DNA of 64,000 nucleotides from Anaeramoeba ignava BMAN. Taxonomy: Eukaryota; Protista; Anaeramoebae. Where the stretch lies: contig JAPDFW010000058.1 in NCBI GenBank assembly GCA_028826165.1, positions 124,001 through 188,000 of the forward strand, read 5' to 3'. Positions 4,313-53,777 of the stretch are shown piece after piece; the stretch's first letter is position 1; the number at the start of each line of letters is the position of its first letter. The notes under the pieces are model-generated. The model saw only the letters and a list, made by a program, of their open reading frames with translations, was not told where the DNA came from and did not search any database. Made by a program: the position numbers and the translations under genes.

Positions 4313-4358
4313 AATCAAAATCAAAATTTTTTTTCATTTTTTCTTGTTTTCAAATTTT

Positions 4359-26633: not shown

Positions 26634-28814
26634 TCAATTTTCTTTTGAAAAAAATAATCGATAATTTTCATTTATCCAAGGTTCATCTTTTTGGAAATTA
26701 TAATCATTAGGAGGAAATGTAAAAGGAAGTCCAATCAAACAATTATTCCAATTTTTTTCACTTGAAAAATTATTTAATAAAACTCCTACTTCATAATTAT
26801 TTATTTTGAAGAAAATTTCTTTTTCATTTCTATGAAGTTTTCCCCAAGAATTCTATTTTGAATTTAATTTTGAATTTTAATTTTAATTTTTAATTTTAAT
26901 TTTGATTTTGATTTTAATTTTAATTTTAAATTTTAATTTTAATTTTAATTTTGATTTTAATTTTAATTTTGATTTTAATTTTAATTTTAATTTTAATTTT
27001 AATTTTGATTTTGATTTTAATTTTAATTTTAAATTTAATTTTAATTTTGATTTTAATTTTAATTTTAAATTTAATTTTAATTTTAATTTTAATTTTAATT
27101 TTAATTTTAATTTTGATTTTGATTTTAAATTCAATTTTAATTTTGATTTTAATTTTAATTTTAATTTTAATTTTAATTTTAAATTTCAATTTTAAATTCA
27201 ATTTTAATTTTGATTTTAATTCTTTGAAAAAAATACAAATGTTAAATTATGTGATCCAAGATAAATATATCTCATATCATCAAATGTAGAGATGATAATT
27301 TGTGAATTTAGAAAAGCAGGATCATTTCCTCTTTTTTGAATTGAACAATCACAAAAAATTTTTTTTGGAAAATCTCTATTTTTCCATTTTCCATTAAAAT
27401 ATAAATATTCCCATCCTATTGATTGCATTCCCATTTTTAAAACTGAATCTAATTTGGGATATAAAATCCTGAAAATATCTAATTCTTGTAATTCGTTTAA
27501 AGACTTAATATTTTCAAAAGGAACTGATTGTAAATTTGAAGTTGAATTTTTATTTTGGAAAAGAAATTTATTTCCTGATGAACTTGAAATGAATTCAAGA
27601 ATCCAATTCAGATATGAGAAAGAATCCAGAATAGTGGATTGATAATAAATGAATTGTTCATGAGGAAGAGATTCTTCTTTTTTTTCTTGTATTTCTTCAC
27701 GAATTGGTGAGTTATCTGGAGATACATATTCTTCCTCCATTTTCTTTTTCTTAGATCGAGTTTTTATTTTTCTTTTACTTTTATGATATTCTTTTTTTTC
27801 ATCACTTGTAGTAATATATGATTTTGATTTTCGATTTAATTTCCCACTTTCATTTTGATTTTGATTTTGATTTTGATTTTGATTTTGATTTTGATTTTGA
27901 TTTTCATTTTCATTTTGATTTTGATTTTCATTTTCATTTTGATTTTGATTTTGATTTTGATTTTGATTTTTTTTTGTAATTGATAATATGATTTTCTTGA
28001 GTCTCATATGTCCATAATCCATCAAATGGGGTTCTCTCCAAATGCCAGGAACAGAAATAATAATCTGAGCATTTGCAGTTGAAAAATCAAAAGGGGAAAT
28101 GAATTCATGAATTAGTCTAGTTGCTTCACATTTATAGAGAAATTTGCTTAATTGAGTTTCAAAATCTGTATCTTCTACATCAAAAACATTCTTGTCCTTT
28201 TTCGGCAAGAAATCTTGGAACCAAATAACTTGGCGAATATTATACCAATCATCTTCTGTTAAATTCGCTGATGTTACAATTACTCTCAATTTCCTTTCAT
28301 AAATCAAAAGTATTAAATTTGCATGGAACCATTGATTTTGTTCCAAAGATGGGTGAAAAAAATAAACATTTGGATTCTTTTTCTCTTTCATTTCCCAATA
28401 GCCTTGATATTCAACTCCATTTATCCAGTGTTTAATTATATATATATTTTTGCATTTGGAAAAATTTGAATCAAGTATTTTTGATTCATATTTAAATGTT
28501 GTTATTAAAACCGATTCAAATTGATCGGGAATGATATTGTCCATCCAAATATTATTGTTTGAATAAATCTTCTTGTTCAATAAATTGTTGATAAAAAATG
28601 ATTTCCCTGAAGAATCAAGTAAAGGTCGAAATGGTTTTTTTATTAATTTAGTTTCATTATTTTCTTCATTGTTTTTTTCATTATTTTTTTCATTATTTTC
28701 TTCATTGTTTTTTTCTTCTTTTTGTTCTGTATTTTCTTGCAAATTTGTTTGAAGCGAAAGAAATATCGCTCTTTGTATTTCTAATGCTTCTTGTTCATCA
28801 AGATCTTTACTCAT
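26634..28814 (-). CDS. TDP1: TDP1-like (tyrosyl-DNA phosphodiesterase 1 fold) protein with N-terminal UIM and degenerate catalytic motifs; intron 26853-27236
   Basis: LRVIVTSANL, QVIWFQDF, IIISVPG, YGHMRL, YLGSHNLTF|NSWG, NNYEVGVL, LPFTFPP..Y...DEPW. UIM-like EQEALEIQRAIFLSL. Confidence 0.8.
26860..27220. repeat. (TTTTAA/TTTTGA)n intronic microsatellite
   Basis: Inside the TDP1-like intron. Confidence 0.9.
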
Positions 28815-28825
28815 AATTTTATTTT

Positions 28826-28910
28826 TGAAAAAAAATGAAAAATGAAAAATGAAAAATGAAAAATGAAAAATGAAAAATGAAAAATGAAAAATGAAAAATG
28901 AAAAAAATGA
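28826..28910 (-). promoter_or_regulatory. Tandem (TTTTTCA)n initiator-like motifs immediately upstream of the TDP1-like ATG
   Basis: About 10 copies of AAAAATG on the + strand read TCATTTT on the sense strand. The same motif precedes most genes in the window. Confidence 0.5.
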
Positions 28911-28978
28911 ATTTCCAAAAAATTTGGATTAAAAAATTTGGATTAAAAAAAAACGTATTTTCAAATTTTGATTTCATT

Positions 28979-30474
28979 TCAAAAAATTAAACAATTATTC
29001 TTTTTTTGTTCTTTTTCAATTTCAATTTTTTGAATAATTTGAATTAATCTTTCTGAATTTAATTGGAAATAATCAACACATTCTTTTAATTCTTCATAAA
29101 TTTTTTTCTTTTTGATTTTTGGAATATTATCAGTATAAAAAAAATGAATTAATGATTGAATAGTTTCTGTTTTTTTGTTACTGTATTCATGAACTGAATT
29201 TGATTTATCTTCACTTATATTAAACATTTCTCTAAATAATTCACTTCTGGTTATTAATATTATTTTATGAACTTTGATTTCTTGATTATTTGAAATAATT
29301 TGGAAATCTTTAGTTTCTTCTGAATTCATTAATATTTCTAAATCTTTTAAAAATAATTCAATTCCTATTTTGAATTCAATTTCACAAATATTTGAAAGTT
29401 TATTTTTCCATTCTTTGAAAATTGGTAAATCATCTGGATATAAAAATTTTCCAAAATAAATCCATTTTAATAAAATATCAACTTCTTTTTGAGAATTTTG
29501 AGATAAAATTGAATATAATTCATTTTTAACTTGATTTTCATTAATTTTTAATCTATTTTGAATAATTAATTTATGAACTGGAATTTTGATTTTATTAAGG
29601 GGATTTTTATCATCTTTACATTCAATTTCAAAATCACAAAATTCTTTTCTTTCAAATAATTTTTGGAAATCTTCTTTAATTGAATATTTGATTTGATTTT
29701 CATCTACATCAAGATTTTCCAAACTAATTTCTGTTAAATCTAAAAAAGCATTATCAATATTAAAACCAGTTTTAGCAGAAACTTCATAAAAAGGAATTTT
29801 TAATTTATCAGCAAATTCTTGTCCTTCTTCTTTTGATATAAATCTTTCATCTTCTAAATCACATTTATTTCCAATTAAAATAAATGGAATTTTTTTCTCT
29901 TTTTTTCCTTTTTCCATGAATCTTAAGATATCTTGATAATATCTTTTCATACATGAAAATGAAGGACAACTTGTAACATCATAAATTAATATAATTCCAT
30001 CAACATAGCTTAAATATTCTTAATAAATAAATTGATAAATAAATTGATAAATTAATTGATAAATAAATTGATAAATAAATTGATAAATAAATCAATAAAT
30101 ACTCATCATTGAATATCGATAAGCATACCTATCATCTAAAAAATATGTAAAAAGAATAAAAAGAATATTTAATTTTAAATTTAATTTTGATTTAATTTTA
30201 AATTTTGGAAAATCCAAAAAATTTTGTTTTTTATTTTTTGTTTTTTAAAATGAATAAAACCTTGAAATGGTTTAACAAATCTTAATAAAATTAAATCTCC
30301 TTCAATTTCAATTATTTTATGATTCAATTCATCATTCCAATCAAAAGGAAATGAATATTTAAATTTATCACAAATATATTTTGATAAAATATTTGATCTT
30401 CCAACATTACCACACCCAACTAAAAGAAAGTTTAAAACAAAATCAAATTCTTTTTCTTTTTCTTGTTTTTCCAT
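28979..30474 (-). CDS. Rab-like GTPase-BTB-BTB-CaaX fusion, copy 1 (degenerate G1/G3; ends CLIF)
   Basis: G1 GCGNVGRS, G3 lost, 33-nt microexon at ~30103-30135, NKCD, SAK, two BTB domains. Confidence 0.8.
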
Positions 30475-30609
30475 TTTATTAATTTTGAATTTTTAAAAAA
30501 ATGAAAAATGAAAAATGAAAAAAATAAATTTCCAAAAAATTTGGATTAAAAAATTTGGATTAAAAAATTTGGATTAAAAAAAAACGTATTTTCAAATTTT
30601 GATTTCATT

Positions 30610-32152
30610 TCAAAAAATTAAACAATTATTTTTTTTTTGTTCTTTTTCTTTTTCTTTTTCCTTTTCCTTTTCTTTTTCTTTTTCTTTTTCTTTTTCAATT
30701 TTTTGAATAATTTTAATTAATCTTTCTGAATTTAATTGAAAATAATCAACACATTCTTTTAATTCTTCATAAATTGTTTCATTTTCAATTTTTGGAAGTT
30801 CATCAGTATAAAAAAAATGAATTAATGATTGAATAGTTTTTGTTTTTTTATTACTATATTCATGAACTGAATTTGATTTATCTTGACTCACATTAAACAT
30901 TCCTCTATATAATTCACTTCTTGTTATTAATATTAATTTATGAACTTTGATTTCTTGATTATTTGAAATAATTTGGAAATCTTTGGTTTCTTCTGAATTC
31001 ATTAATATTTCTAAATCTTTTAAAAATGATTCGATTCCTGTTTCAAATTCAATTTCACAAATATTTGAAAGTTTATTTTTCCATTCTTTGAAAATTGGTA
31101 AATCATCTGGATATAAAAATTTTCCAAAATAAATCCATTTTAATAAAATATTAACTTCTTTTTGAGAATTTTGAGATAAAATTGAATATAATTCATTTTT
31201 AACTTGATTTTCATTAATTTTCAATCTGATTTGGATAATTAATTTATGAATTGGAATTTTGATTTTATTAAGAGGATTTTGATCATCTTTACATTCAATT
31301 TCAAAATCACAAAATTCTTTTCTTTCAAATAATTTTTGGAAATCTTCTTGAATTGAATATTTATTTTTGGGTTTTAATTGATTATTTTCATCAAGATTTT
31401 CCATAATATTTCTTGCTAATTCAAAAAAAGCATTATCAACATTAATATTATTTTTAGCAGAAACTTCATAAAAAGGAATTTCTAATTTATCAGCAAATTC
31501 TTGTGCATATTCTTTTGAAATTTGTCTTTTTTCTTCCAAATCACATTTATTTCCAATTAAAATAATTTGAACATTTTCATCTACTTTTTGTTTAATTGTT
31601 TTTATCCATTTTTTGATATTTTGAAAAGAAATTTCATCAGTAATATCATAAACTAAAAGAATTCCATGAGCTCCTCTTAAATAAGCTAAAATATATAATT
31701 TTAATTTTAATTTTAATTTTAATTTTATTTTTAAATTGATTTTTAAATCGAATTTTAATTTAAATTTTAATTTTAATTTTGATTTTAATTTTAATTTTAA
31801 TTTTAATTTTAAATTTAATTTACCTGTAGTAATTGTTTTAAAACGTTCTTTAATTATTTAATAAATAAATAAAAATTAATAAAAATAAAATTAAATAAAG
31901 TTAAATTTAAAATAAATTCAATTAAATTTATTTTAAAAACCTTGACCAGCTGTGTCCCAAATTTGTAATTTCACTTTTTGGTTTTCAATTTCTATTGTTT
32001 TTGTTTTAAAATCAACTCCAAGAGTTGTTATAAAAGAAGGGGAAAATGTATCATCAGCAAATCTTAATAAAATTTGTGATTTTTTTGTTTTGTTCCAGAA
32101 TCTCCAATTAATAACATTTTTAAAAGTAAATCATAATCTTGTTTTTTTCCAT
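30610..32152 (-). CDS. Rab-BTB-BTB-CaaX copy 2 (homopolymer frameshifts in exon 1; ends CLIF)
   Basis: WDTAGQ|ERFKTITT|AYLRGAHG via the 24-nt microexon 31824-31847. A-run indels at ~32085-32150. Confidence 0.75.
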
Positions 32153-32269
32153 TTTATTAATTTTGATTTTTGGAAAATGAAAAATGAAAAATGAAAAATG
32201 AAAAATGAAAAATGAAAAACGAAAAATGAATTTTGTTTTTGAATTAAAAACGTTTTTCAAATTGATTAT

Positions 32270-33720
32270 TCAAAAATTTTGTTCTTCTTTTTCTTCAATT
32301 TTTTGAATAATTTTAATTAATCTTTCTGAATTTAATTGGAAATAATCAACACATTCTTTTAATTCTTCATAAATTGTTTTATTTTCAATTTTTGGAATAT
32401 TATCAGTATAAAAAAAATGAATTAATGATTGAATAGTTTTTGTTTTTTTATTACTATATTCATGAACTGAATTTGATTTATCTTCACTTACATTAAACAT
32501 TCCTCTATATAATTCACTTCTGGTTATTAATATTAATTTATGAACTTTGATAATTTGATTATTTGAAATAATTTGGAAATCTTTGGTTTCTTTTGAATTC
32601 ATTAATATTTCTAAATCTTTTAAAAATGATTTTATTCCTCTTTTAAATTCAATTTTACAAATATTTGAAAGTTTATTTTTCCATTCTTTTAAAATTAATG
32701 AATTTGAATATAAAACTTTTCCAAAATAAATCCATTTTAATAAAATATCAACTTCTTTTTGAGAATTTTGAGATAAAATTGAATATAATTCATTTTCAAT
32801 TTGATTTTCATTAATTTTTAATCTATTTTGAATAATTAATTTATGAATTGGAATTTTGATTTGGGATTCATTTTGATCATCTTTACATTCAATTTCAAAA
32901 TCACAAAATTCTTTTCTTTCAAATAATTGTTTAAAATCATCTTGAATTGTATATTTGATTTGATTTTCATCTACATCAAGATTTTCCAAACTAATTTCTG
33001 TTAAATGAAAAAAAATATTATCAATATTAATATTATCTTTAGTAGAAACTTCATAAAAGGGGATTTGATATTCATCAGCAAATTCTTTTCCTTCTTCTTG
33101 TGATACTTGTCTTTTTTCTTCCAAATCACATTTATTTCCAATTAAAATAATTTGAACATTTTCATTTGTATTTTGTTTAATTTCTTGAATCCAATTTCCA
33201 ATATTTTCAAACGAATTTTCATTAGTAATATCATAAACTAACATAATTCCAACAGCTCCTCTATAATAAGCTAAAATATAAAATTTTAATTTTAATTAAA
33301 TTTTAAATAGTTTTATTAATTTTAATTTTGGAATTAATTTTAATTTTTATCTAAAAATATTTTTAAAAAGAATATAAAGAATATTTAATTAGTTTTTAAT
33401 TTTAATTTTAATTTTAAATTTACCTGAAACAATGTCAAAAATTTTGTTTTAATTTTTTAATAAAAAAAATAAAACCTCCATGAATTAAATTAAATTTAAA
33501 AAATTCAATTAAAATTTTAAATCTCCTTCAATTTCAATTTTTATTTTGATTATTTTCCCTTTTATTTCAATCTTAGGGAAATCAAAACAAAATGCATCTT
33601 AAAATCTTTATCATTACAATATTTTGATAAAATAGTTTTTATTCCAGCATTATAATATCCAACTAAAAGAAAGTTTAAAACAAAATCAAATTCTTCTTTT
33701 TCTTCTTTTTCTTTTTCCAT
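32270..33720 (-). CDS. Rab-BTB-BTB copy 3 (degenerate exon 1, no CaaX; possible pseudogene)
   Basis: Exon 3 is intact (AYYRGAVG...NKCD...STK...BTB). Exon 1 has G1 GYYNAG with indels, and the microexon acceptor is unclear. Confidence 0.65.
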
Positions 33721-33868
33721 TTTATTTAATTTTGAATTTTGAAAAATGAAGAATGAAAAATGAAAAATGAAAAATGAAAAATGAAAAATGAAAAATGAAA
33801 AATGAAAAATGAATGAAAAAAAATGAATGAATTTTGTTTTTTTTTGAATAAATTATTTTTTGGATTGA

Positions 33869-35341
33869 TTATTTTAGATTTTGTTCTTCTTTTTCTTTTT
33901 CAATAATTTTAATTAATCTTTCTGAATTTAATTGGAAATAATCAACACATTCTTTTAATTCTTCATAAATTGTTTCATTTTCAATTTTTGGAATATTATC
34001 AGTATAAAAAAAATGAATTAATGATTCAATAGTTTCTGTTTGTTTATTACTGTATTCATGAACTGAATTTGATGTATCTTGACTCACATTAAACATTCCT
34101 CTAAATAATTCACTTCTTGCTAACAATATTAATTTATGAACTTTGATAATTTGATTATTTGAAATAATTTGGAAATCTTTAGTTTCTTCTGAATTCATTA
34201 ATATTTCTAAATCTTTTAAAAATGATTCGATTCCTGTTTCAAATTCAATTTCACAAATATTTGAAAGTTTATTTTTCCATTCTTGAAAAATTGATAAATC
34301 TGAATATGAAACTTTTCCAAAATAAATCCATTTTAATAAAATATTAACTTCTTTTTGAGAATTTTGAGATAAAATTGAATATAATTCATTTGTAACTTGA
34401 TTTTCATTAATTTTCAATCTATTTTGAATAATTAATTTATGAATTGGAATTTTGATTTGGGATTCAGTTTCATCATCTTTACATTCAATTTCAAAATCAC
34501 AAAATTCTTTTCTTTCAAATAATTGTTTAAAATCATCTTGAATTGAATATTTGGGTTTTGGTTGAGGAATTAATTCCTTGTTTTCATCAAGATTTTCAAG
34601 AATATTGCTTGTTAAAGAATTAAAAATATTATCAATATTAATATTATCTTTAGCAGAAACTTCATAAAAAGGAATTTCTAATTTATCAGCAAATTCTTGT
34701 GCATATTCTTTTGAAATTTGTCTTTTTTCTTCCAAATCACATTTATTTCCAATTAAAATAATTTGAACATTTTCATTTGTATTTTGTTTAATTGTTTTTA
34801 TCCATTTTTCTTCAATATTTTGGAAAGAAGTTTCATTAGTAATATCATAAACTAAAAGAATTCCATAAGAGCCTCTATAATAAGCTAAAATATAAAATAA
34901 AATATAAAAAATAAAGATTTTAAAGAAAAATTTTAATTTTAATTTTAAATTTTTGATTTTTTTTAATTTTGATTTTTTTAATTTTGATTTTTAAGTTTTT
35001 AATTTTTTTTAATTTTAATTTTGCTTTAAAAACGTTCTTTAAATATTTAATTATTTAAAAAGAATAAAAATTAATAAAAAAAAATTCCTAAATTAAAATT
35101 AATTTAAATTTAAATTTAATTTAATTTAAAAACCTTGACCAGCTGTGTCCCAAATTTGTAATTTCACTTTTTGGTTTTCAATTTCAATTGTTTTTATAGC
35201 AAATTCAATTCCAATAGTTGCGACATGAGCATCATAAAATTTTTCATCAATATATCTTGTTAAAATATTTGATTTCCCAACTTTAGAATCTCCAATTAAT
35301 ACATATTTAAAAAGTAAATCATAATTTGATTTATTTTCCAT
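33869..35341 (-). CDS. Rab-BTB-BTB copy 4 (canonical G1-G5, no CaaX; microexon damaged)
   Basis: [27 protein letters not shown]; ends EEQNLK. Confidence 0.75.
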
Positions 35342-35392
35342 TTTATTAATTTTAAATTTTAAAAAAAATGAAAAAATGAAAAAAAATGAATT

Positions 35393-36824
35393 TCATAAAA
35401 TTAAACAAATACTATTTCCATTTGATTCTTTTTCAATTTCTTGTTCATTTTCTTCTTCAATTTTTCAATAATTTGAATTAATCTTTGTGAATTTAATTGA
35501 AAATAATCAACACATTCTTTTAATTCTTCATAAATTGTTTCATTTTCAATTTTTGGAATATTATCAGTATAAAAAAAATGAATTAATGATTGAATAGTTT
35601 CTGTTTGTTTATTACTGTATTCATGAACTGAATTTGATTTATCTTCACTTATATTAAACATTCCTCTATATAATTCACTTCTGGTTATTAATATTATTTT
35701 ATGAACTTTGATTTCTTGATTATTTGAAATAATTTGGAAATCTTTAGTTTCTTCTGAATTCATTAATATTTCTAAATCTTTTAAAAATGATTCAATTTGT
35801 GTTCCAAATTCAATTTTACAAATATTTGAAAGTTTATTTTTCCATTCTTTTAAAATTGATAAATCTTGATATGAAACTTTTCCAAAATAAATCCATTTTA
35901 ATAAAATATCAACTTCTTTTTGAGAATTTTGAGATAAAATTGAATATAATTCATTTTCAATTTGATTTTCATTAATTTTCAATCTATTTTGAATAATTAA
36001 TTTATGAATTGGAATTTTGATTTGGGATTCAGTTTCATCATCTTTACATTCAATTTCAAAATCACAAAATTCTTTTCTTTCAAATAATTGTTTAAAATCA
36101 TCTTGAATTGAATATTTGATTTTATTTTTGGGTTGTAATTGATTATTTTCATCAATATTTTCAAGAATATTCCTTGTTAATTCTAAAAAAGCTTCATCAA
36201 TATTAGTATTATCTTTAGCAGAAACTTCATAAAAAGGAATATCTAAATTATCAGCAAATTGTTTTCCTTTTTCTTTTGATACTTTTCTTTTTTCTTCTAA
36301 ATCAGATTTATTTCCAATTAAAATCATTTGAACATTTTCATCTGCATACTTTTTGGCTTCTTTAATCCAATTTTCAATATTTTGGAAAGATTTTTCATTA
36401 GTGATATCATAAACTAAAACAATTCCATAAGTTCCTCTATAATAAACTAAAATATAAAAATCAATCAATTTTTTAAATTTTTTTGAATTTTTTTTTGGAA
36501 TAAAAGGAAAGAACCTGGAGTAAGTGATCTAAAACGTTCTTTAATGAATAAAATTTCAATTAAAAATTTATTGATAAAATAAATTCAATTAAATTTAATT
36601 TAAAAACCTTGACCAGCTGTGTCCCAAATTTGCAATGTTATTATTTTCCCATTGATTTGAATTTTTTTCACTTTAAAAAATGCTCCAATAGTTGTATTTG
36701 GAGAACTTGTTCCAAAAGTATGACAATATCTTGTTAAAATACTTGTTTTTCCAACAGAAGTGTCTCCAATTATAATAAATTTAAAAAGTAAATCATATTC
36801 TTTTTCTTTTTCTTTATTTTCCAT
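35393..36824 (-). CDS. Rab-BTB-BTB-CaaX copy 5 (CLIL-stop reached after a 1-nt shift near the end)
   Basis: GDTSVGKT and WDTAGQ|ERFRSLTP|VYYRG. TGT TTA ATT TTA TGA at 35407-35393 lies in an alternate frame. Confidence 0.8.
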
Positions 36825-36875
36825 TTTATTTAATTTTGAAATGAAAAATGAAAAAAATGAAAAATAAAAACGTAT

Positions 36876-38286
36876 TCAAAAATTAAAAATTTTCTTATTT
36901 TTTTCTTTTTCCTTTTCTTTTTCAATTTTTGGAATAATTTGAATTAATCTTTCTGAATTTAATTGAAAATAATCAACACATTCTTTTAATTCTTCATAAA
37001 TTGTTTCATTTTCAATTTTTGGAATATTATCAGTATAAAAAAAATGAATTAATGATTGAATAGTTTCTGTTTGTTTATTACTGTATTCATGAACTGAATT
37101 TGATTTATTTTCACTTATAATAAACACTCCTCTATATAATTCACTTCTGGTTATTAATATTATTTTATGAACTTTGATTTCTTGATTATTTGAAATAATT
37201 TGGAAATCTTTAGTTTCTTCTGAATTCATTAATATTTCTAAATCTTTTAAAAATGATTTTATTCCTGTTTCAAATTCAATTTTACAAATATTTGAAAGTT
37301 TATTTTTCCATTCTTTTAAAATTGATAAATCTTTAAATAAAACTTTTCCAAAATAAATCCATTTTAATAAAATATCAACTTCTTTTTGAGAATTTTGAGA
37401 TAAAATTGAATATAATTCATTTGTAATTTGATTTTCATTAATTTTCAATCTATTTTGAATAATTAATTTATGAATTGGAATTTTGATTTTTTTAAGAGGA
37501 TTTTGATCATCTTTACATTCAATTTCAAAATCACAAAATTCTTTTCTTTCAAATAATTTTTGGAAATCATCTTGAATTGAATATTTGATTTTATTTTTGG
37601 TTTTAATTGATTATTTTCATCAAGATTTTCAAGAATATTCGTTGTTAATTCTAAAAAAGCTTCATCAATATTAATAATATTTTTAGCAGAAACTTCATAA
37701 AAAGGAATATTTAATTCATCAGCAAATTCATTTCCTTCTTCTTTTGATATTTTCCTTTCAACTTCTAAATCACATTTATTTCCAATTAAAATAATTTGAA
37801 TATTTTCATCTGAATATTCTTTAATTTCTTGAATCCATTTTTTGATATTTTGGAAAGATTCTTCATTAGTAATATCATAAACTAAAAGAATTCCATGAGC
37901 TCCTCTAAAATAAACTAAAATATAAAATCAATAAATTTAATTAATTTTTGATTTTGATTTTTGAAAAAATAAAATTAAATAAATAAATTGTTCTATCAAA
38001 TTTTTGAATAAATAAAAATTAAAAAATAAAAAAAAATAAAATATTAATTTAATTTAAAAATATTAAAAACCTTAAATTTAGATAAATCCCAAAATTTGTA
38101 ATTTAATTTTCTTTTCATTAATTTCTATTAATTTTTATAAAATTAATTCCAATCGTTTTCTTTGTATTCTTCTTGGAATTCATTTTTATAAAATCTTCTT
38201 AAAATACTTGTTTTCCCAACTTTACAATCTCCAATTAATAAAATTTTAAAAACAAAATCATATTCTTTTCTTCTTTTATTTTCCAT
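36876..38286 (-). pseudogene. Rab-BTB-BTB copy 6 (frameshifts, degenerate G3 and microexon)
   Basis: GDCKVGKT is present; the G3 region reads WDLSKFK. There is a 1-nt deletion at ~37597 relative to copy 5, and the CaaX cysteine is lost. Confidence 0.6.
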
Positions 38287-38329
38287 TTTATTTAATTTTG
38301 AAAAATGAAAAAAATGAAAAAATGAAATT

Positions 38330-39724
38330 TCAAAAATTAAACAATTCTTCTTTTTGGATCAATTTTTTTTCCTTTTCAATTTCTTTTTCAATTTTTTGAA
38401 TAATTTGGATTAATCTTTCTGAATTTAATTGAAAATAATCAACACATTCTTTTAATTCTTCATAAATTGTTTTATTTTCAATTTTTGGAATATCATCAGT
38501 ATAAAAAAAATGAATTAATGATTGAATAGTTTCTGTTTGTTTATTACTGTATTCATGAACTGAATTTGATGTGTCTTGACTCACATTAAACATTCCTCTA
38601 TATAATTCACTTCTGGCCAACAATATTATTTTATGAACTTTGATTTCTTGATTATTTGAAATAATTTGGAAATCTTTAGTTTCTTCTGAATTCATTAATA
38701 TTTCTAAATCTTTTAAAAATGGTTTTATTTCTGTTTCAAATTCAATTTTACAAATATTTGAAAGTTTATTTTTCCATTCTTTAAAAATTGATGAATTTGA
38801 ATATGGAACTTTTCCAGAATAAATCCATTCTAATAAAACATTAACTTCTTTTTGAGAATTTTGAGATAAAATTGAATATAATTCATTTTTAACTTGATTT
38901 TCATTAATTTTCAATCTATTTTGAATAATTAATTTATGAATTGGAATTTTGATTTTTTCAACAGGATTTTTATCATCTTTACATTCAATTTCAAAATCAC
39001 AAAATTCTTTTCTTTCAAATAATTGTTTGAAATCATCTTGAATTGAATATTTAATGAAATTTTCATTTCCATCAGTATTTTCCAGAATATTTCTTGTTAA
39101 ATGAATAAAGGGATCATCAACATTAATATTATCTTTAGTAGAAATTTCATAAAAAGGAATATTTAATTTATCAGCAAGTTCTTTTCCTTTTTCTTTTGAT
39201 ATTTTTCTTTGATATTCTAAATCACATTTATTTCCAACTAAAACAATTGGAACATTTTTATTTCCATATTGCTTAATATCTTTCATCCATTTTTGTTCAA
39301 TACTTTCAAAAGATTTTTCATCAGTAACATCATAAACTAAAAAAACACCTTCAGATCCTCTTAAATAAACTAAAATAAAAAATGAATCAATTTTTTAAAT
39401 GTTTTTGAAAGAAAAAATTTTTCATTTAAAATAAAAGAAATGAAAAATATGAATAATTGTTCTAAAACGTTCTTTAAAAAAAAAATTTAAATCAAAAAAA
39501 TAACAAAATTTGAAAAAAAATATAATTTAATTTTAATTTAAAAACCTTGACCAGCTGTGTCCCAAAATCTTAAATTAATTTCTTTTTTCAATTTCAATTG
39601 TTTTTATTTTAAATTCAATTCCAATAGTTGGAATAAATTCATTTTTACAAAATCTTGATAAAATTCATCATTTTCCAAAAAATCTTTTTAAAATATTTGC
39701 TTTTTCCAACTTCAGATTCTCCAT
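38330..39724 (-). pseudogene. Rab-BTB-BTB copy 7 (5'-truncated exon 1, microexon donor missing)
   Basis: Exon 1 begins at GESEVGK with no upstream beta-1 strand or in-frame ATG. DTAGQ is present and exon 3 is intact. Confidence 0.6.
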
Positions 39725-39862
39725 TTCTTTTTAATGAAAAATGAAAAGAAAATTTAAAAAAAAAAAAATTTTCTTTTAAACAATTATTTTTTTTTTATTT
39801 TTCATTTTTTTAATTTAAAGAATTTAATTGAAAAAATGAAAATTCTTTTGAAAAATGAAATT

Positions 39863-41307
39863 TCAAAAATTAAACAATTATTCTTTTTGTTCTTTTTTTT
39901 TCCTTTTCAATTTCTTTTCTTTTTTTTTCAATTTCAATTTTTGAATAATTTTAATTAATCTTTCTGAATTTAATTGAAAATAATCAACACATTCTTTTAA
40001 TTCTTCATAAATTATTTTCTTTTTGATTTTTGGAATATTATCAGTATAAAAAAAATGAATTAATGATTGAATAGTTTCTGTTTGTTTATTACTGTATTCA
40101 TGAACTGAATTTGATTTATCTTCACTTATATTAAACATTCCTCTAAATAATTCACTTCTGGTTATTAATATTAATTTATGAACTTTGATTTCTTGATTAT
40201 TTGAAATAATTTGGAAATCTTTAGTTTCTTCTGAATTCATTAATATTTCTAAATCTTTTAAAAATGATTTTATTCCTATTTTGAATTCAATTTTACAAAT
40301 ATTTGAAAGTTTATTTTTCCATTCTTTTAAAATTGATAAATCTTGATATGAAACTTTTCCAAAATAAATCCATTTTAATAAAATATCAACTTCTTTTTGA
40401 GAATTTTGAGATAAAATTGAATATAATTCATTTTCAATTTGATTTTCATTAATTTTTAATCTATTTTGAATAATTAATTTATGAATTGGAATTTTGATTT
40501 TATTAAGAGGATTTTGATCATCTTTACATTCAATTTCAAAATCACAAAATTCTTTTCTTTCAAATAATTTTTGGAAATCATTTTGAATTGTATATTTGAT
40601 CATATTTTCATCTTCATCAAGATTTTCAAAAATATTTCTTGTTAATTCAATAAAAATATTATCAATATTAATATTATTTTTAGCAGAAACTTCATAAAAA
40701 GGAATATTTAATTCATCAGCAAGTTCTTTTCCTTTTTCTTTTGATATTTCTCTTTTTTCTTCCAAATCACATTTATTTCCAATTAAAATCATTTCAACAT
40801 TTTCATTTGTATATTCTTTAATTTCTTTCAACCAATAATTATTGATATTTTCAAAAGATTCTTTATTAGTAATATCATAAACTAAAAAAATTCCTTGAGC
40901 TCCTCTATAATACACTTAAATATAAAAATCCATCGATAAATCAATCAATTAATTCTTTTTGGATTTTTTAAATAAATAAAAGATAAAGATACTTGGTGAA
41001 ATTAATCTAAAACGTTCTTTAAATTTGGAAATAAAAATATGAAAATGAATAAATTGAAGCTTAAAATTGAATTTTTAAATTAATTATAAAAACCTGGAAT
41101 TGTTATATCCCAAAGTTGTAATTGAATTCTTGTGGAATCAATTTCTATTGTTTTCATTTTTAAAGCAGCTCCAAGAGTTCGCATATATTCTTCTGTAAAT
41201 TGATTATCACAAAATTTTGATAAAATCTGTGTTTTTCCAACTTCAAAAAAACCAACTAATAAAATTTTAAACAATAAATCATATTCTTTTTCTTCTTCTT
41301 TTTCCAT
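39863..41307 (-). CDS. Rab-BTB-BTB(-CaaX) copy 8 (G3 reads WDITIP)
   Basis: GFFEVGKT, microexon ERFRLISP, MYYRGAQG. NNCLIF is encoded in a shifted frame at the 3' end. Confidence 0.75.
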
Positions 41308-41358
41308 TTTATATAATTTTGAAAAATGAAAAAAATGAAAAAAATGAAAAATGAAATT

Positions 41359-42768
41359 TCAAAAAATTAAACAATTATTCTTTTTTTCTTTTTCCTTTTC
41401 AATTTCTTTTTTAATTTCAATTTTTTGAATAATTTTAATTAATCTTTCTGAATTTAATTGGAAATAATCAACACATTCTTTTAATTCTTCATAAATTTTT
41501 TCATTTTCAATTTTTGGAATATTATCAGTATAAAAAAAATGAATTAATGATTGAATAGTTTCTGTTTGTTTATTACTGTATTCATGAACTGAATTTGATT
41601 TATCTTCACTTATATTAAACATTCCTCTATATAATTCACTTCTGGTTATTAATATTATTTTATGAACTTTGATTTCTTGATTATTTGAAATAATTTGGAA
41701 ATCTTTAGTTTCTTTTGAATTCATTAATATTTCTAAATCTTTTAAAAGTGATTTTATTCCTCTTTTGAATTCAATTTTACAAATATTTGAAAGTTTATTT
41801 TTCCATTCTTTGAAAATTGATAAATCTTGATATAAAACTTTTCCAAAATAAATCCATTTTAATAAAATATTAACTTCTTTTTGAGAATTTTGAGATAAAA
41901 TTGAATATAATTCATTTTTAATTTGATTTTCATTAATTTTCAATCTATTTTGAATAATTAATTTATGAATTGGAATTTTGATTTTATTAAGAGGATTTTT
42001 GATCATCTTTACATTCAATTTCAAAATCACAAAATTCTTTTCTTTCAAATAATTTTTGGAAATCATCTTGAATTGAATAAAGGATTTTGGTTTTGTTATT
42101 TTTGCTATTATTTATTAGATCCATTATTTTCTCGAATATTTCTTGTAATTTCAAAAAAAGTATTATCAATATTAATATTATTTTTAGCAGAAACTTCATA
42201 AAAAGGAATTTTATATTCATCAGCAAATTCTTTTCCTTTTTCTTTTGAAACTTGTCTTTTTTCTTCTAAATCACATTTATTTCCAATTAAAATTGTTTTA
42301 ACATTTTCATTTGCATTTTCTTTAATACTTGTCATCCAATTTTCTTCAATATTTTCAAAAGATTCTTCATTAGTAATATCATAAACTAAAATAATTCCAT
42401 GAGCTCCTCTATAATAGCCTTAAATATAAAATTAAATCAATAAATTTTATTTAAAATGAAACAAAAAGGAAGATTACTATTTGTTATTTTTTTAAAACGT
42501 TCTAAATAAAAATATAAATTAAAAATTAAAAATTAAAAATATATAATTTAAATTCAATTTAAAAACCTTGACCAGATGTATCCCAAATAACTAATTTGAT
42601 TCCTCCTGAATCAATTGTAATTCTTTTTGTGTTAAAATCAACTCCAATAGTTGATAGATATTCATCTGAAAATTCGTTTTCACAAATTCTCCTTAAAATA
42701 CTTGATTTACCAATTTCACAATCTCCAATTAATAAAACATTATAAAGATAATCATATTCTTCTTCCAT
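41359..42768 (-). CDS. Rab-BTB-BTB-CaaX copy 9 (homopolymer frameshifts; ends CLIF)
   Basis: [20 protein letters not shown]|ERFKKITN. The ORF track splits exon 3 into three frames. Confidence 0.7.
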
Positions 42769-42821
42769 TTTATTTATTTATGAAAAAAAATGAAAAAAAT
42801 GAAAAAATGAAAAATGAAATT

Positions 42822-44239
42822 TCAAAAAATTAAACAATTATTCTTTTTTTGTTCTATTATTTCATTTTTAATTTTAATTTCAATTTTTGGAATAATTTGA
42901 ATTAATCTTTCTGAATTTAATTGAAAATAATCAACACATTCTTTTAATTCTTCATAAATTTTTTCATTTTCAATTTTTGGAATATTATCAGTATAAAAAA
43001 AATGAATTAATGATTGAATAGTTTCTGTTTGTTTATTACTGTATTCATGAACTGAATTTGATTTATCTTCACTTATATTAAACATTCCTCTATATAATTC
43101 ACTTCTGGTTATTAATATTATTTTATGAACTTTGATAATTTGATTATTTGAAATAATTTGGAAATCTTTAGTTTCTTCTGAATTCATTAATATTTCTAAA
43201 TCTCTTTAAAAAAGTTCGAATTCCTCTTTTGAATTCAATTTTACAAATATTTGAAAGTTTATTTTTCCATTCTTTGAAAATTGATAAATCTTGATATAAA
43301 ACTTTTCCAAAATAAATCCATTTTAATAAAATATCAACTTCTTTTTGAGAATTTTGAGATAAAATTGAATATAATTCATTTTTAATTTGATTTTCATTAA
43401 TTTTTAATCTATTTTGAATAATTAATTTATGGATTGGAATTTTGATTTTATTAAGAGGATTTTGATCATCTTTACATTCAATTTCAAAATCATAAAATTC
43501 TTTTCTTTCAAATAATTTTTGGAAATCTTCTTGAATTGTATAATTAATTCTTGTTTTTATTTTTGCTATAATATTAGATCCATTATTTTCTCGAATATTT
43601 CTTGTAATTTCAAAAAAAATATTATCAATATTAATATTATTTTTAGCAGAAACTTCATAAAAAGGAATTTGATATTTATCAGCAAATTCTTTTCCTTCTT
43701 CTTTTGATATTTCTCTTTTTTCTTCCAAATCACATTTATTTCCAATTAAAATTGTTTTAACATTTTCATTTGCATTTTCTTTAATACTTGTCATCCAATT
43801 TTCTTCAATATTTTCAAAAGATTCTTCATTAGTAATATCATAAACTAAAACAAGGCCATGAGCTCCTCTATAATAGCCTTAAATATAAAATTAAATCAAT
43901 AAATTTTATTTAAAATGAAATAAAAAGAAAGATTACTATTTGTTATTTTTTTAAAACGTTCTAAATAAAAATATAAATAAAAAATTAAAAATTAAAAATA
44001 TATAATTTAAATTCAATTTAAAAACCTTGACCAGATAAATCCCAAATATGTAATTTGATTCTTTTGGAATCAATTGTAATTCTTTTTGTGTTAAAATCAA
44101 CTCCAATAGTTGATAGATATTCATCTGAAAATTCGTTTTTACAAATTCTCCTTAAAATACTTGATTTACCAATTTCACAATCTCCAAGAATTAAAACATT
44201 ATAAAGATAATCAATATATTCACCTGTTTCAAATGCCAT
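42822..44239 (-). CDS. Rab-BTB-BTB-CaaX copy 10 (one frameshift at ~43205; ends CLIF)
   Basis: [20 protein letters not shown]. Near-duplicate of copy 9, including the introns. Confidence 0.75.
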
Positions 44240-44504
44240 TATTTATAAATGAAAAAAAATGAAAAAAATGAAAAATGAAAAATCGGATAAAAAAAAAACG
44301 TTTTTTTTTATTTTAATTTTAATTAATAAAAAAAGAAGAAAAAAATTTTGTTTTTCCCTTTTTTTTTTTGCTTTTTAATTTTTTTTAATTAAAAAATTTT
44401 TTTTTTTGTTATTTCTTTTTTCATTTTTCTATTCTCTCAATTTTTTTTTTTTAATACAAAAATAATTTAATTTAAGAAAAACTTAAAACTTAAAACATAA
44501 AACA

Positions 44505-46825
44505 ATGAGAGAAATTATTCATGTACAAGTTGGACAATGTGGAAATCAAATTGGATGGAAATTTTGGGAAACAATTTGTCAAGAACATGGAATAAATCCA
44601 GATGGCCAATATGAAGGAGATAATGAATTACAACTTGAAAGAATTGGTGTTTATTTCACAGAAGCAACTGGCGGTAAATGTCAAATGTTTTTCTTTTTTT
44701 TTTTGTCAAAATTAAAAATAACAATTTTTAACAAATATTTTTAATAATTTAAAAATTCTTAATCAAATATAAATCAATCTTATAAAAAGAAATAGCAAAT
44801 TTAAATACAAAAAAAATTTTCTCCTTTTTTTATTATTCTTAAAAAAAAAAAATTTTCTCCTTTTTTCTTTTTCTTTCATTTTCTCACAATAAATTTTAAT
44901 TTCAAATTCATTTATAAAATTCATTTTGATATTAAAATTCATTTTGATATTAAAATTCAAATTCATTTTGATATTAAAATTCAAATTCATTTTGATATTA
45001 AAATTCAAATTCATTTATAAAATTCATTTATAAAATTCAAATTCATTTTGATATTAAATTTCATTTAGAATTAAAATTCATTTAGAATTAAAATTCATTT
45101 TGATATTAAATTTAAAATTAAAATTAAAATTCATTTATAAAATTAAAATTCATTTTGAAATTAAAATTCAAATTAAAATTTTTTTTGATATTAATAGCAA
45201 GATATGTTCCAAGAGCTGTTCTTGTTGATTTAGAACAAGGTGTAATGGATTCAATTAGAGGATCAAAAATGGGCAAATTATTCAAACCAGATACAATGGT
45301 TTATGGACAATCAGGAGCAGGAAACAACTGGGCAAAAGGACATTATACAGAAGGAGCAGAATTAATTGAAAATGTAATGGAAGTTATTCGAAAAGAATCA
45401 GAAAATTGTGATTGTCTTCAAGGATTTCAAATTTCTCATTCTCTTGGAGGTGGAACTGGTTCAGGTCTTGGAACTCTCTTACTTTCTCGCATTCGTGAAG
45501 AGCATCCTGACAGAATGATTGCAACTTTTTCTGTTGTTCCTTCACCAAAAGTCTCTGATACTGTTGTTGAACCCTATAATGCTACTCTTTCTGTTCATCA
45601 ACTTGTTGAAAATGCTGATGAAGTTATGTGTATTGATAATGAAGCTCTTTATAGAATTTCAACTAATACTTTGAATATTCCTAATCCTTCTTATCCTGAT
45701 TTGAATCATTTAGTTTCTTCTGTTATGAGTGGAATTACTTCTACTTTAAGATTTCCAGGTTTGTTTTCAAAAAAATATTTCAAAAAATTTCAAAAACATG
45801 AAATATAAAAAAATCAAAAACATGAAATATAAAATGAAATTAATTAAATTCAAAAAAATATTTCAAAAAATTTCAAAAACATGAAATATAAAAAAATCAA
45901 AAACATGAAATATAAAATGAAATTAATTAAATTCAAAAAAAATATTTCAAAAAATTTCAAAAACATGAAATATAAAATGAAATTAATTAAATTCAAAAAA
46001 ATATTTCAAAAAATGTTAAAAAAATGAAATATAAAATGAAATTAATTAAATTTAAAAAAAATATTCAAAAAATATTAAAAACATGAAATATAAAATGAAA
46101 TTAATTAAATTCAAAAATATTATTTAATAGGTCAACTTAATTCCGATCTTAGAAAATTAGCAGTCAATTTAATCCCATTCCCAAGATTACACTTTTTCTT
46201 AATTGGATTCGCACCCTTAACAAGAAGAGATGCAATTGGATACACAGCATTATCAGTTCCCGAATTAACACAACAAATGTTTTCACCCAAGAACATGATG
46301 GCAGCAGCAGATCCATCACTTGGAAAATACTTAACAGCATCAGCAATGTTCAGAGGAAGAATCCCAACAAAAGAAATTGACGACAACATGCTTTCCTTAC
46401 AGAATAAATATCAAGGACAATTTATTGAATGGATCCCAAATAACATCAAAAGCACAATTTGTGATATTCCACCAAAAGGACATAAAATAAGTGTCACTTT
46501 TATTGGAAATTCAACTTCCATTCAAGAATTATTCAAAAGAATCGAAGGTCAATTCACTAAAATGTTCAGAAGAAGAGCTTTTGTTCATTGGTATCTTGGT
46601 GAAGGAATGGATGAGTCAGAATTTGCTGAATCTCAAAACAATATGAAGGATCTTGTTAAAGAATATCAACAATATCAAGATGCTACTCTTGATGATGTTT
46701 TTGGTGAAGAAGATGAACAAGATGAAGTCGACAGTCAAGAAGAAGTTCAAAGTGGTCAAGAACAAGTAAGTGGAGATGAAGATGATGCTCAAGTTGATGA
46801 TGATGATGGTGAAGATGATGATTAA
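44505..46825 (+). CDS. TUBB: Beta-tubulin, divergent, with a long acidic tail; exons 44505-44673, 45198-45758, 46131-46825
   Basis: [47 protein letters not shown]|[12 protein letters not shown]. Confidence 0.97.
45770..46120 (+). repeat. Intronic tandem repeat (CAAAAACATGAAATATAAAATGAAATTAATTAAATTC-containing units)
   Basis: Several ~60-85-bp units in tubulin intron 2. Confidence 0.8.
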
Positions 46826-47105: not shown

Positions 47106-47178
47106 TGAGCCTAGAAGGACTTGAACCCTCAACCTTTTGATCTGGAGTCAAACGCACTACCATTTGTGCTATAGGCTC
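47106..47178 (-). tRNA. trnW-CCA: tRNA-Trp (CCA), intronless, 73 nt
   Basis: GAGCCTA/TAGGCTC acceptor stem, GCAC/GTGC D-stem, TTTGA-CTCCAGA-TCAAA anticodon arm and GAGGG-TTCAAGT-CCTTC T-arm, followed by T-runs (Pol III terminator). Confidence 0.97.
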
Positions 47179-50100
47179 TTTATTTAAATTAATTTAATTT
47201 AAATTTTCTTATTTTTATTTTTTAAAAATAATATTTATTTAAATTAAAAATAAAAATATTTTATAAATTTATTTTAATATTTTTAATAATAATATATTAT
47301 AATTTATTTATATTTTAATTTAAAATATAATTTACATAAAATATAATTAAATTAATTAAATTAAATATATATTAAATATTAATATAAAATAATTAAAATA
47401 TTTTATTCCACTTTTTTATTTAATAAATTTATATTAATATTTTTAATAATTTTATATTATTATTTATTTATAAATTTATACCATTTGTGCTATAGGCTCT
47501 TTATTTAATTATTTAAATTTAAATTTTCTTATTTTTATTTTTTAAAAATATTATTTATTTAAATTAAAAATAAAAATATTTAATAAATTTATTTTAATAA
47601 TTTTAATAATAATATATTATAATTTATTTATATTTTAATTTAAAATATAATTTATATAAAATATAATTAAATTAATTAAATTAAATATATATTAAATATT
47701 TATATAAAATAATTAAAAATATTTTATTCCACTTTTTTATTTAATAAATTTATTTTTAATATTTTTAATAATTTTATATTATTATTTATTTATAAATTTA
47801 TACCATTTGTGCTATAGGCTCTTTATTTAAAATTATTTAATTTAAATTTTCTTATTTTTATTTTTAAAAATAATATTTATTTAAATTAAAAATAAAAATA
47901 TTTAATAAATTTATATTAATAATTTTAATAATTATATATTATAATTTATTTATATTTTTATTTAGAATATAATTTATATAAAATATAATTAAATCATTTA
48001 AATTAAATATATATTAAATATTTATATAAAAATAATTAAAATATTTTATTCCACTTTTTATTTAATAAATTTATTTTAATATTTTTAATAATTATATATT
48101 ATTATTTATTTATAAATTTATACCATTTTGTGCTATAGGCTCTTTTATTTAATTATTTAATTTAAATTTTCTTTCTTATTTTTATTTTTAAAAATAATAT
48201 TTATTTAAATTAAAAATAAAAATATTTTATAAATTTATTTTAATATTTTTAATAATAATATATTATAATTTATTTATATTTTAATTTAGAATATAATTTA
48301 TATAAAATATAATTAAATTATTTAAATTAAATATATATTAAATATTTATATAAAATAATTAAAATATTTTATTCCACTTTTTATTTAATAAATTTATTTT
48401 AATATTTTTAATAATATTATATTATTATTTATTTATAAATTTATACCATTTGTGCTATAGGCTCTTTATTTAATTATTTAATTTAAATTTTTCTTATTTT
48501 TATTTTTAAAAATAATATTTATTTAAATTAAAAATAAAAATATTTAATAAATTTATTTTAATATTTTTAATAATAATATATTATAATTTATTTATATTTT
48601 TATTTAAAAATATATTTTATATAAAATATAATTAAATTATTTAAATTAAATATATATTAAATATTTATATAAAATAATTAAAATATTTTATTCCACTTTT
48701 TATTTAATAAATTTATATTAATATTTTTAATAATATTATATTATTATTTATTTATAAATTTATACCATTTGTGCTATAGGCTCTTTATTTAATTATTTAA
48801 TTTAAATTTTTTCTTATTTTTTATTTTTTAAAAAATAATATTTATTTAAATTAAAAATAAAAATATTTAATAAATTTATTTTTAATATTTTTAATAATAA
48901 TATATTATAATTTATTTATATTTTTATTTAAAATATATTTTATATAAAATATAATTAAATTAATTAAATTAAATATATATATTAAATATTAATATAAAAT
49001 AATTAAAATATTTTATTCCACTTTTTATTTTAATAAATTTATTTTAATATTTTTAATAATATTATATTATTATTTATTTATAAATTTATACCATTTGTGC
49101 TATAGGCTCTTTTATTTAAATATTTAATTTAAATTTTCTTATTTTTTTATTTTTAAAAATATTATTTATTTAAATTAAAAATAAAAATATTTTATAAATT
49201 TATTTTTAATATTTTTAATAATAATATATTATAATTTATTTATATTTTAATTTAGAATATAATTTATATAAAATATAATTAAATTATTTAAATTAAATAT
49301 ATATTAAATATTTATATAAAATAATTAAAATATTTTATTCCACTTTTTATTTAATAAATTTATTTTAATATTTTTAATAATATTATATTATTATTTATTT
49401 ATAAATTTATACCATTTGTGCTATAGGCTCTTTTATTTAATTATTTAATTTAAATTTTTCTTATTTTTATTTTTTAAAAATATTATTTATTTAAATTAAA
49501 AATAAAAATATTTAATAAATTTATTTTAATATTTTTAATAATAATATATAATAATTTATTTATATTTTTATTTAAAATATATTTTATATAAAATATAATT
49601 AAATTAATTAAATTAAATATATATTAAATATTTATATAAAATAATTAAAATATTTTATTCCACTTTTTATTTAATAAATTTATTTTAATATTTTTAATAA
49701 TTATATATTATTATTTATTTATAAATTTATACCATTTGTGCTATAGGCTCTTTATTTTAAATTATTTAATTTAAATTTTCTTATTTTTATTTTTAAAAAT
49801 ATTATTTATTTAAATTAAAAATAAAAATATTTAATAAATTTATATTAATAATTTTTAATAATTATATATTATAATTTATTTATATTTTTATTTAAAATAT
49901 AATTAAATTATTTAAATTAAATATATATTAAATATTAATATAAAATAATTAAAATATTTTATTCCACTTTTTATTTAATAAATTTATATTAATATTTTTA
50001 ATAATTTTATATTATTATTTATTTATAAATTTATACCATTTGTGCTATAGGCTCTTTATTTAATTATTTAATTTAAATTTTTCTTATTTTTATTTTTTAA

Positions 50101-52330: not shown

Positions 52331-52423
52331 TTTTATTATTTAAGAAAAATAAAAATAAAATGTGGAAAAATGAAATGGGGAAATGATAAAAATATTTTTT
52401 TCTTTTTATTATTTGTTTATTTA

Positions 52424-53650: not shown

Positions 53651-53777
53651 AAAAATTTTTTTTTCTTTTTTAGTAATTATTATTAATTTTTAGTAATTTT
53701 TAATAATTTAAAAAAAAAAAATGAAAAAATAAAATTTTTTTTAAATTTTTTTTTCTTTTTTTTATCGTCTTTTTTAA

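Follow-up and report, generated by a model that had tools for sequence, protein, structure and literature searches.

A mostly decayed tandem array of Rab-BTB-BTB fusions in Anaeramoeba ignava, part of a candidate family of cullin-3 adaptors

Introduction

To our knowledge, RhoBTB has so far been the only small GTPase known to be fused to a pair of BTB domains. Anaeramoeba ignava is an anaerobic amoeba of the Metamonada, and we examined a 64,000-nucleotide (nt) stretch of its genome ("the window"; GenBank assembly GCA_028826165.1, contig JAPDFW010000058.1, positions 124,001 to 188,000; contig C59 below), with a G+C content of about 20%, in which ten head-to-tail direct repeats in register, all coding on the minus strand, run from the stop codon of unit U1 at 28979 to the ATG of unit U10 at 44239. 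The family to which the repeats belong joins a Rab1/Rab8-like GTPase to two BTB domains (BTB1 and BTB2) and, in its well-kept members, to a C-terminal CaaX box.

In architecture the closest described system is RhoBTB (RhoBTB1-3 of animals and RacA of Dictyostelium; PMC4931677). There too a small GTPase is followed by two BTB domains, the G domain is often atypical or inactive and the protein is a cullin-3 (CUL3) adaptor, as is predicted here for the array proteins; RhoBTB3, in addition, ends in a CaaX box (PMC4931677). The differences are numerous. The G domain of RhoBTB is of Rho type, whereas that of the array is Rab1/8-like; in RhoBTB the linker is rich in proline and the first BTB is bipartite, interrupted by an insertion, whereas the array proteins have a short linker (about 15-20 residues, with one proline) and a compact BTB1; RhoBTB has a BACK-like C-terminus, none being found by Pfam in the array proteins; RhoBTB proteins are 600-730 residues long, those of the array about 420; and CUL3 is bound by the first BTB in RhoBTB but is predicted to dock on BTB2 here. 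The BTB-BTB cassette of the array is moreover shared with other Anaeramoeba families, pointing to a separate origin.

In evolutionary behaviour the nearest parallel is the MATH-BTB family of grasses (PMC4091423). These proteins (SPOP/BPM-type, present also in nematodes) likewise combine a conserved BTB with a variable recognition domain, and occur in tandem arrays with many pseudogenes, rice having 69 genes and 41 pseudogenes (PMC4091423). BTB2 of the array resembles the BTB of SPOP; unlike MATH-BTB, the array proteins would use a Rab-like GTPase as the recognition module in place of MATH, and have two BTBs and a predicted lipid anchor.

For A. flamelloides, the Anaeramoeba genome paper gives a count of almost 400 Rabs, of which 75-80% are unclassified, and it emphasises the expansion of Rab and trafficking families in connection with the symbiosome; BTB is unmentioned in that paper and its supplements. 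A preliminary description of the array, made from the sequence alone, knew of no characterised family like it. This holds for the searchable literature, where we found no description of a Rab-BTB, RabBTB or Ras-BTB family, but the proteins themselves already have public annotations, 'ras family' or 'rab8/rab-13'.

Results

Structure of the fusion

Unit U5 is the sole fully clean copy with canonical G1-G5 motifs; it was studied through the identical public protein P0001 (428 residues), and the remaining units were searched exon by exon. Read directly from the U5 DNA, a unit consists of three exons: exon 1 from the ATG through DTAGQ, a 24-nt mini-exon 2 coding for ERFRSLTP, and exon 3 from YYRG through the stop, separated by two phase-1 introns of 69 and 68 nt, in exact agreement with P0001. 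Exon 3 is one open frame in which LVYDIT, NKxD and SAK, belonging to the latter half of the GTPase domain, precede the two BTB domains, and Pfam found Ras together with BTB in such long exons. Since exon 3 alone holds half of the G domain and both BTBs in frame, the fusion does not depend upon splicing.

The GTPase had been called Rab1/Rab8-like in the preliminary description, and this identity, as against Rho, is well supported by sequence comparison. The best 60 PDB matches of the U5 G domain were all Rabs (Rab1B, Rab8A, Rab1A, Rab10, Sec4, Ypt1, Rab3, Rab35 and Rab11 among them; E 1e-56 to 1e-48), with no Rho and no grouping with Rho, and the match to Rab1B (193 bits) covered the whole length. 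Switch II of U5 (ERFRS) is of Rab type, the Rab family motifs RabF1-5 are present, and U5 has a 26-residue stretch of these (letters not shown) as well as LVYDIT. The Rab motifs quoted earlier are present in the array, but not in every unit: IGVDF occurs in U9 and U10 (LGVDF in U2), a ten-residue motif (letters not shown) in U2 and U4, YYRGA in U3, U8, U9 and U10, and LVYDIT in most units, and the family motifs are degenerate in U1, U3, U6, U7 and U8. U5 has the full G1-G5 set, and the exons of U4, U9 and U10 keep it; the set is incomplete in U1 (where arginine replaces lysine and G3 is missing), in U8 (DITIP) and in the decayed U2, U3, U6 and U7. Family-wide, many G domains are without the P-loop lysine, the DxxG glycine or the catalytic glutamine. 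Compared with Rab1, Rab8 and Rab10, which the U5 G domain matches throughout, the array proteins have neither the hypervariable tail nor the CC/CXC double-prenylation tail of Rabs and have the BTB pair in its place, plus a single-cysteine CaaX box (CLIF) where this is kept; many copies have also lost catalytic or binding residues.

The BTB pair and its predicted partner

Both of the BTB domains claimed in the preliminary description were recovered, BTB2 by a clear Pfam pass and BTB1 by structure. BTB1 is divergent, scoring 20.1 bits against a Pfam cut-off of 20.5; folded alone it gave a compact model of 109 residues with a predicted local distance difference test score (pLDDT) of 88.5, and when this was compared with 48,161 chains the best 36 matches (the complete set with Z >= 5) were all BTB/POZ domains, headed by the BTB of SLX4 (Z 8.1, about 100 residues aligned). 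The BTB-BTB model (pLDDT 91; predicted template modelling score 0.86) had its best structural match in 4u2m/4u2n (Z 16.2, root mean square deviation 4.1, 207 residues, model residues 4-228), which are artificially tethered pairs of POZ domains, and the two BTBs therefore model as an internal pseudo-dimer, in the arrangement of the classic BTB dimer. A single long Lys/Glu-rich helix follows BTB2 in the model.

By sequence BTB2 lies closest to KBTBD2 and SPOP, both of them CUL3 adaptors. The hydrophobic-x-Glu loop after helix alpha3 is an established CUL3 contact; at this position I-S-E of BTB2 aligned on L-S-E of KBTBD2, and the cassette family consensus is V-T-E. A. ignava has a CUL3 orthologue, encoded on contig C58 (P0179, 736 residues; best PDB match Cullin-3 at 4e-127), which bears the public name 'cullin-3a-related' and is also present in a transcriptome set. 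A complex model of CUL3 (residues 1-385) with the BTB pair scored 0.71, whereas none of its three controls scored above 0.00. At least 66% of the contacts were common to the three runs, with a partner pLDDT of at least 84. In calibration, the mark was reached by 51 of 78 solved pairs and by 2 of 108 mismatched pairs. The modelled interface places CUL3 residues 42-55 and 109-121 (helices H2 and H5) against BTB2 residues 153-162, 170 and 209-212, the BTB2 side being the canonical contact surface made up of helix alpha3 and the I-S-E loop. As solved BTB-CUL3 complexes exist, a pass of this kind shows likeness to known complexes and not binding of this copy. The CUL3 adaptor role put forward in the preliminary description is thus plausible, in that the orthologue exists and the model passes, with binding itself predicted only.

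PDB matching also revealed an enlarged cullin family in A. ignava, on contigs C64, C71, C109, C74, C57 and C58: at least three CUL4-like members (L014, L015, L019), two tandem CUL1-like, one CUL1/2-like and the one CUL3. A further locus, L018, is an apparent close copy of L014 and may be a fourth CUL4-like member.

Origin of the fusion

The BTB-BTB tail of P0001 (244 residues) found more than 50 RCC1-BTB-BTB proteins of A. ignava, as well as ankyrin-BTB-BTB proteins, at about 38% identity over about 210 residues, several of them ending in KCLIF or CMIL. These proteins (IBtk-like) carry the same BTB-BTB(-CaaX) cassette, and differ from the array in having RCC1 or ankyrin at the N-terminus and not a GTPase. 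A cassette profile run against 1.84 billion cluster representatives returned 394 clusters at E <=1e-30 and 924 at <=1e-10, and each of the ten clusters looked up came from A. ignava or A. flamelloides. RCC1, ankyrin, armadillo and Ras are among the N-terminal partners of the cassette, and many of the proteins end in CaaX; public proteins P0121, P0124, P0303 and P0305 are examples of this superfamily, in which the cassette may be extended by a polybasic CaaX. The large Ras+BTB clusters of the ESM Atlas nearest to P0001 were all RhoBTB. Because the cassette is common to hundreds of other Anaeramoeba proteins with differing N-termini, the fusion is a product of local domain shuffling, and the independence from RhoBTB that had been proposed is well supported at the level of sequence.

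About 31 loci in the genome have the G-domain half and BTB-BTB in one exon: the ten described here, six on contig C81, pairs on C77, C66 and C143, and singletons elsewhere. The Rab-type members form one clade of the cassette tree, and none was seen outside A. ignava among the best 120-150 matches listed. Separate clades of the tree hold a Ras-type GTPase-BTB-BTB-CaaX class, with the same cassette and the same domain order, whose G domain is closest to K-Ras and M-Ras (P0325 has K-Ras as best PDB match, 2e-19). Unlike the Rab type, this class is encoded in intronless single open frames and is present in two species, A. ignava and A. flamelloides (P0325, P0349). With the Ras-type class placed elsewhere on the tree, the cassette has captured small GTPases at least twice; a single origin of all GTPase fusions, which we had considered, was rejected. 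The Ras-type loci L007 and L009-L013 lie on contigs C126, C35, C62, C70, C76 and C1, and several of them are without the P-loop lysine and G3.

State of the ten units

Most copies in the array are damaged. The ten repeats of the preliminary description were confirmed by repeat search, which placed them on the minus strand 1463-1673 bp apart, but ten intact genes were not; similarly, its CaaX membrane anchor is found as CLIF with a stop in frame in four of the ten units (U1, U2, U9 and U10, as against six of six in the array on C81), and not in the other six. As the array is mostly decayed, 'ten genes' and 'CaaX' fit the family and not every unit here. The condition of each unit is given in Table 1.

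Among the units with uninterrupted frames, U1 has the P-loop GCGNVGRS and no DxxGQ; with the P-loop lysine replaced and DxxGQ absent, it is probably a pseudo-GTPase. In U8 the G3 region reads WDITIP, glycine and glutamine both being absent, and in U5 a 1-nt change shifts the tail frame relative to the sister units, which accounts for the missing CaaX. The 24-nt exon 2 of U4 has an in-frame stop and no donor; public model P0002 skips this exon with the frame preserved. In U3, exon 1 meets a stop after 52 codons and has no G3 motif and no donor site. U6, broken in exon 1 and shifted in exon 3, is probably a pseudogene. A CLIF remnant is present in U7, out of frame and with no stop behind it. No public model was seen for U2, and in public models P0004, P0008, P0010 and P0011 several of the lesions are masked by invented introns or truncations.

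Nanopore reads underlie the A. ignava assembly, which was corrected with Racon and Nanopolish and then went through two Pilon rounds (PMC11550330), so the single-base indels in A-runs (U2, U6, U9) could be errors. The decayed exon 1 of U3, U6 and U7, the exon 2 of U4 and the frameshift of U10, which is not a plain homopolymer change, are lesions of another kind.

In every unit the ATG is preceded, at a distance of 10-90 nt, by short (T5-7CA)n repeats. One copy is also upstream of the neighbouring Tdp1-like gene, and further copies are found upstream of minus-strand starts that include unrelated genes; the repeats may be a promoter-proximal element general to the A. ignava genome.

Table 1. Units of the C59 array and other features, in positions of the window
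Feature	Position	Strand	State or content
U1	28979-30474	-	Uninterrupted three-exon frame; public protein P0007, 428 aa; C-terminal CLIF
U2	30610-32152	-	Exon 3 intact, CLIF end; exon 1 with two frameshifts in A7-A8 runs; aberrant P-loop
U3	32270-33720	-	Exon 3 intact, no CaaX; exon 1 decayed
U4	33869-35341	-	Exons 1 and 3 intact; canonical G1 and G3; no CaaX
U5	35401-36824	-	Fully clean, canonical G1-G5; P0001; no CaaX
U5 exon 1	36608-36824	-
U5 exon 2	36515-36538	-
U5 exon 3	35401-36446	-
U6	36876-38286	-	Exon 1 broken (stop; G3 replaced); exon 3 with 1-nt deletion near 37603; no CaaX
U7	38330-39724	-	Exon 1 over three frames; exon 3 intact; G domain motifs lost
U8	39878-41307	-	Uninterrupted model; public protein P0003, 424 aa; no CaaX
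U9	41359-42768	-	Exons 1 and 2 intact; exon 3 with two +1 frameshifts in A-runs near 42098 and 41997; CLIF in last frame
U10	42822-44239	-	Exons 1 and 2 intact; exon 3 with one +1 frameshift near 43204; CLIF in last frame
(T5-7CA)n, upstream of units	28836-44282	-	Short repeats
(T5-7CA)n, Tdp1-like gene	28836-28907	-	Copy upstream of the gene
(T5-7CA)n, further copies	59171-59186; 61748-61763; 1131-1157		Upstream of minus-strand starts
Tdp1-like gene	27216-28814	-	Flank of array
Beta-tubulin gene, split	from 44505	+	Flank of array
Kelch-BTB-SAM frame and ankyrin-repeat frame	3029-6098	+	Adjoining open frames; the second 584 aa
ABC-2 type transporter frames	54015-63309	-	Four tandem open frames with membrane domains
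tRNA-Trp (CCA) gene	47106-47178	-
Low-G+C tracts	12001-14000; 48001-50000; 52001-54000		G+C 4-10%
12-nt-period repeats	27003-28067; 31609-31931; 44816-45042		Low complexity, intergenic and intron DNA

Evolution of the array

The second array (L001, G000:C81:343500-353499) has six Rab-BTB-BTB copies and is better kept than the one on C59; exon 3 is uninterrupted in three of the six, and one tail has a long Gln-Asn repeat. The BTB-BTB part is 92-97% identical in nt sequence in the C59 array, and 92-99% within either array compared to 90-93% between them, and it groups strictly by array. For the G-domain half of exon 3, nt identity is 76-96% in the C59 array (75-96% over both arrays). For exon 1, amino acid identity within arrays is 23-79%, with most pairs at 23-58% and only U9 and U10 reaching 79% in C59; the nearest relative of U8 exon 1 is copy V6 of the C81 array, at 69%. 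Synonymous divergence by simple Nei-Gojobori counting was 0.36 in C59 and 0.23 in C81 for exon 1, 0.15 and 0.04 for the G-domain half of exon 3, and 0.07 and 0.04 for BTB-BTB. In both arrays divergence thus falls steeply from 5' to 3', as would fit concerted evolution at the 3' end and the survival of older types of exon 1.

Nonsynonymous to synonymous changes in C81 numbered 53:3 in the G-domain half and 21:8 in BTB-BTB (Fisher p = 0.006). In the C81 G domains the variable sites are located where switch II ends and in the surface helices alpha3, alpha4 and alpha5; the core strands, NKxD and SAK are conserved in all units. By Nei-Gojobori the ratio of nonsynonymous to synonymous rates (dN/dS) was 1.3-3.0 for the G-domain half and, within the C59 array, about 0.6-0.9 for the BTBs. 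Codon models in IQ-TREE gave 0.13-2.6 for the G-domain half, varying with the codon-frequency model, and in C81 0.44-2.6 for that half compared to 0.11-0.37 for BTB-BTB; the values hinge on how the extreme A+T bias is handled. Given this spread, the claim is limited to a G-domain dN/dS ratio above the BTB ratio within C81, and the G domain clearly evolves under weaker or different constraint.

Other features of the window

The four ABC-2 type transporter frames are another local gene array. The Kelch-BTB-SAM frame is directly followed by the ankyrin-repeat frame, and the two may be one gene. The low-G+C tracts listed in Table 1 are far below the mean of about 20% for the window, and the 12-nt-period repeats translate as Asn-Phe or Lys-Ile runs. 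The tRNA-Trp gene was the sole Rfam or ARAGORN match in the window.

Discussion

The explanation we favour, and consider probable while well short of certain, is that the repeats are a birth-and-death tandem array of a family so far found only in Anaeramoeba, whose products would be membrane-anchored cullin-3 adaptors with a Rab-like recognition module. In these proteins the N-terminal Rab1/Rab8-like G domain carries, instead of the prenylated tail of a Rab, two BTBs that would pack into an internal pseudo-dimer; behind them come the Lys/Glu-rich helix and, in well-kept members, a polybasic CaaX box (CLIF). BTB2 would dock cullin-3 via its alpha3 helix and the I-S-E loop behind it, and the CaaX box, if prenylated as predicted, would fix the protein on a membrane, bypassing the usual Rab escort and GDP dissociation inhibitor cycle. 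The variable Rab-like domain might then serve as the recognition module, bringing Rab-binding proteins to the ligase, or might itself be the regulated cargo. The 3' BTB-BTB part is near-uniform within arrays, probably through gene conversion; the 5' G-domain exons are old and diverse, many G domains having lost nucleotide-binding or catalytic residues. The data show the architecture, the Rab identity, the fold of both BTBs, the sharing of the cassette and the divergence pattern, whereas CUL3 binding, prenylation and a substrate role of the G domain are predictions. Placement on endosomes, phagosomes or symbiont compartments, as the preliminary description had it, is conjecture.

Several observations weigh against this explanation. 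Clean frames as assembled are found only in U1, U5 and U8; U4 has its broken mini-exon, and each of the other six units has a frameshift or a decayed exon 1. No unit of the array joins canonical G motifs, a clean frame and a CaaX box, and protein cluster searches found no transcriptome-derived proteins clustering with the array genes. Pfam found no BACK or 3-box domain after BTB2. The pass of the complex model may reflect memory of solved BTB-CUL3 structures, and partner binding by the Rab-like domain is something that we infer. Positive selection on the G domain was dropped as a claim, dN/dS above 1 not being robust across codon models.

The Rab-like domain could instead be the regulator of the protein. 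In a self-regulated switch of the RhoBTB style, it would fold onto the BTB pair and block CUL3 until released by a ligand or nucleotide, with substrates binding elsewhere. RhoBTB, with the same domain order, has a G domain that binds the first BTB and inhibits CUL3 binding (PMC4931677), and the catalytic residues are lost in many members of our family as they are in atypical GTPases. We nonetheless regard this as unlikely, as proteins of about 420 residues offer no other substrate-binding domain, the sister proteins have classic recognition domains (RCC1, ankyrin, armadillo) where the G domain stands, the linker is short and not proline-rich, and the CUL3 site is predicted on BTB2 and not on BTB1.

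The damage itself would be explained if the copies on C59 were a dead relic, untranscribed or non-functional, with the function of the family residing in other loci such as the array on C81. The lesions in exons 1 to 3, the loss of CaaX in six units, the missing transcript-derived proteins and a BTB dN/dS near 0.6-0.9 by simple counting are all in agreement with this. It is quite unlikely all the same: three-exon frames of about 425 codons are kept in U1, U5 and U8 and every G motif in U5, the core strands, NKxD and SAK are conserved across all units, the upstream T-rich repeats are kept, and some of the indels, lying in A-runs, may be errors of the Nanopore-based assembly.

A more speculative extension, to which we give a slender chance, is that Rab- and Ras-BTB-BTB-CaaX proteins are membrane-bound decoys, in which diversifying GTPase-like baits would capture Rab- or Ras-targeting effectors of bacteria, or host regulators with the same targets, and pass them to cullin-3 for ubiquitination. 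In a related species there is a Legionellales symbiont that has a Dot/Icm secretion system (bioRxiv 10.64898/2026.04.11.717937). If the decoy reading is true, an amoeba that lives with intracellular bacteria would have in these proteins a means of innate defence or of symbiont control.

It is improbable, in our view, that the BTB pair works independently of cullin-3, as an oligomerisation or scaffolding module at the membrane that would make the proteins clustered Rab-like platforms. Many BTB domains do not bind CUL3, the absence of BACK and the 3-box would suit such a role, and BTB1 and BTB2 would already satisfy each other as a pseudo-dimer; against this, BTB2 keeps the hydrophobic-x-Glu loop and is nearest in sequence to SPOP and KBTBD2, and the complex model passes where the controls score zero. 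That the array is an artefact, a repeat falsely expanded in a Nanopore-based assembly, can be set aside as highly improbable, because divergence among the copies is 3-8% for BTB-BTB, 4-24% for the G-domain half and as much as 77% of amino acids for exon 1, because length, introns and lesions vary as well, and because contig C81 has a second, different array.

In these genes the GTPase-BTB-BTB design arose anew from Rab, and separately from Ras, by the joining of a BTB-BTB-CaaX cassette. If the cassette proteins are cullin-3 adaptors, the amoeba would possess an unusually large set of membrane-anchored ubiquitin-ligase receptors. The family also provides, on a single scaffold, a natural set of G domains ranging from active-looking to degenerate, which could be used to test the role of a GTPase inside a ligase adaptor.

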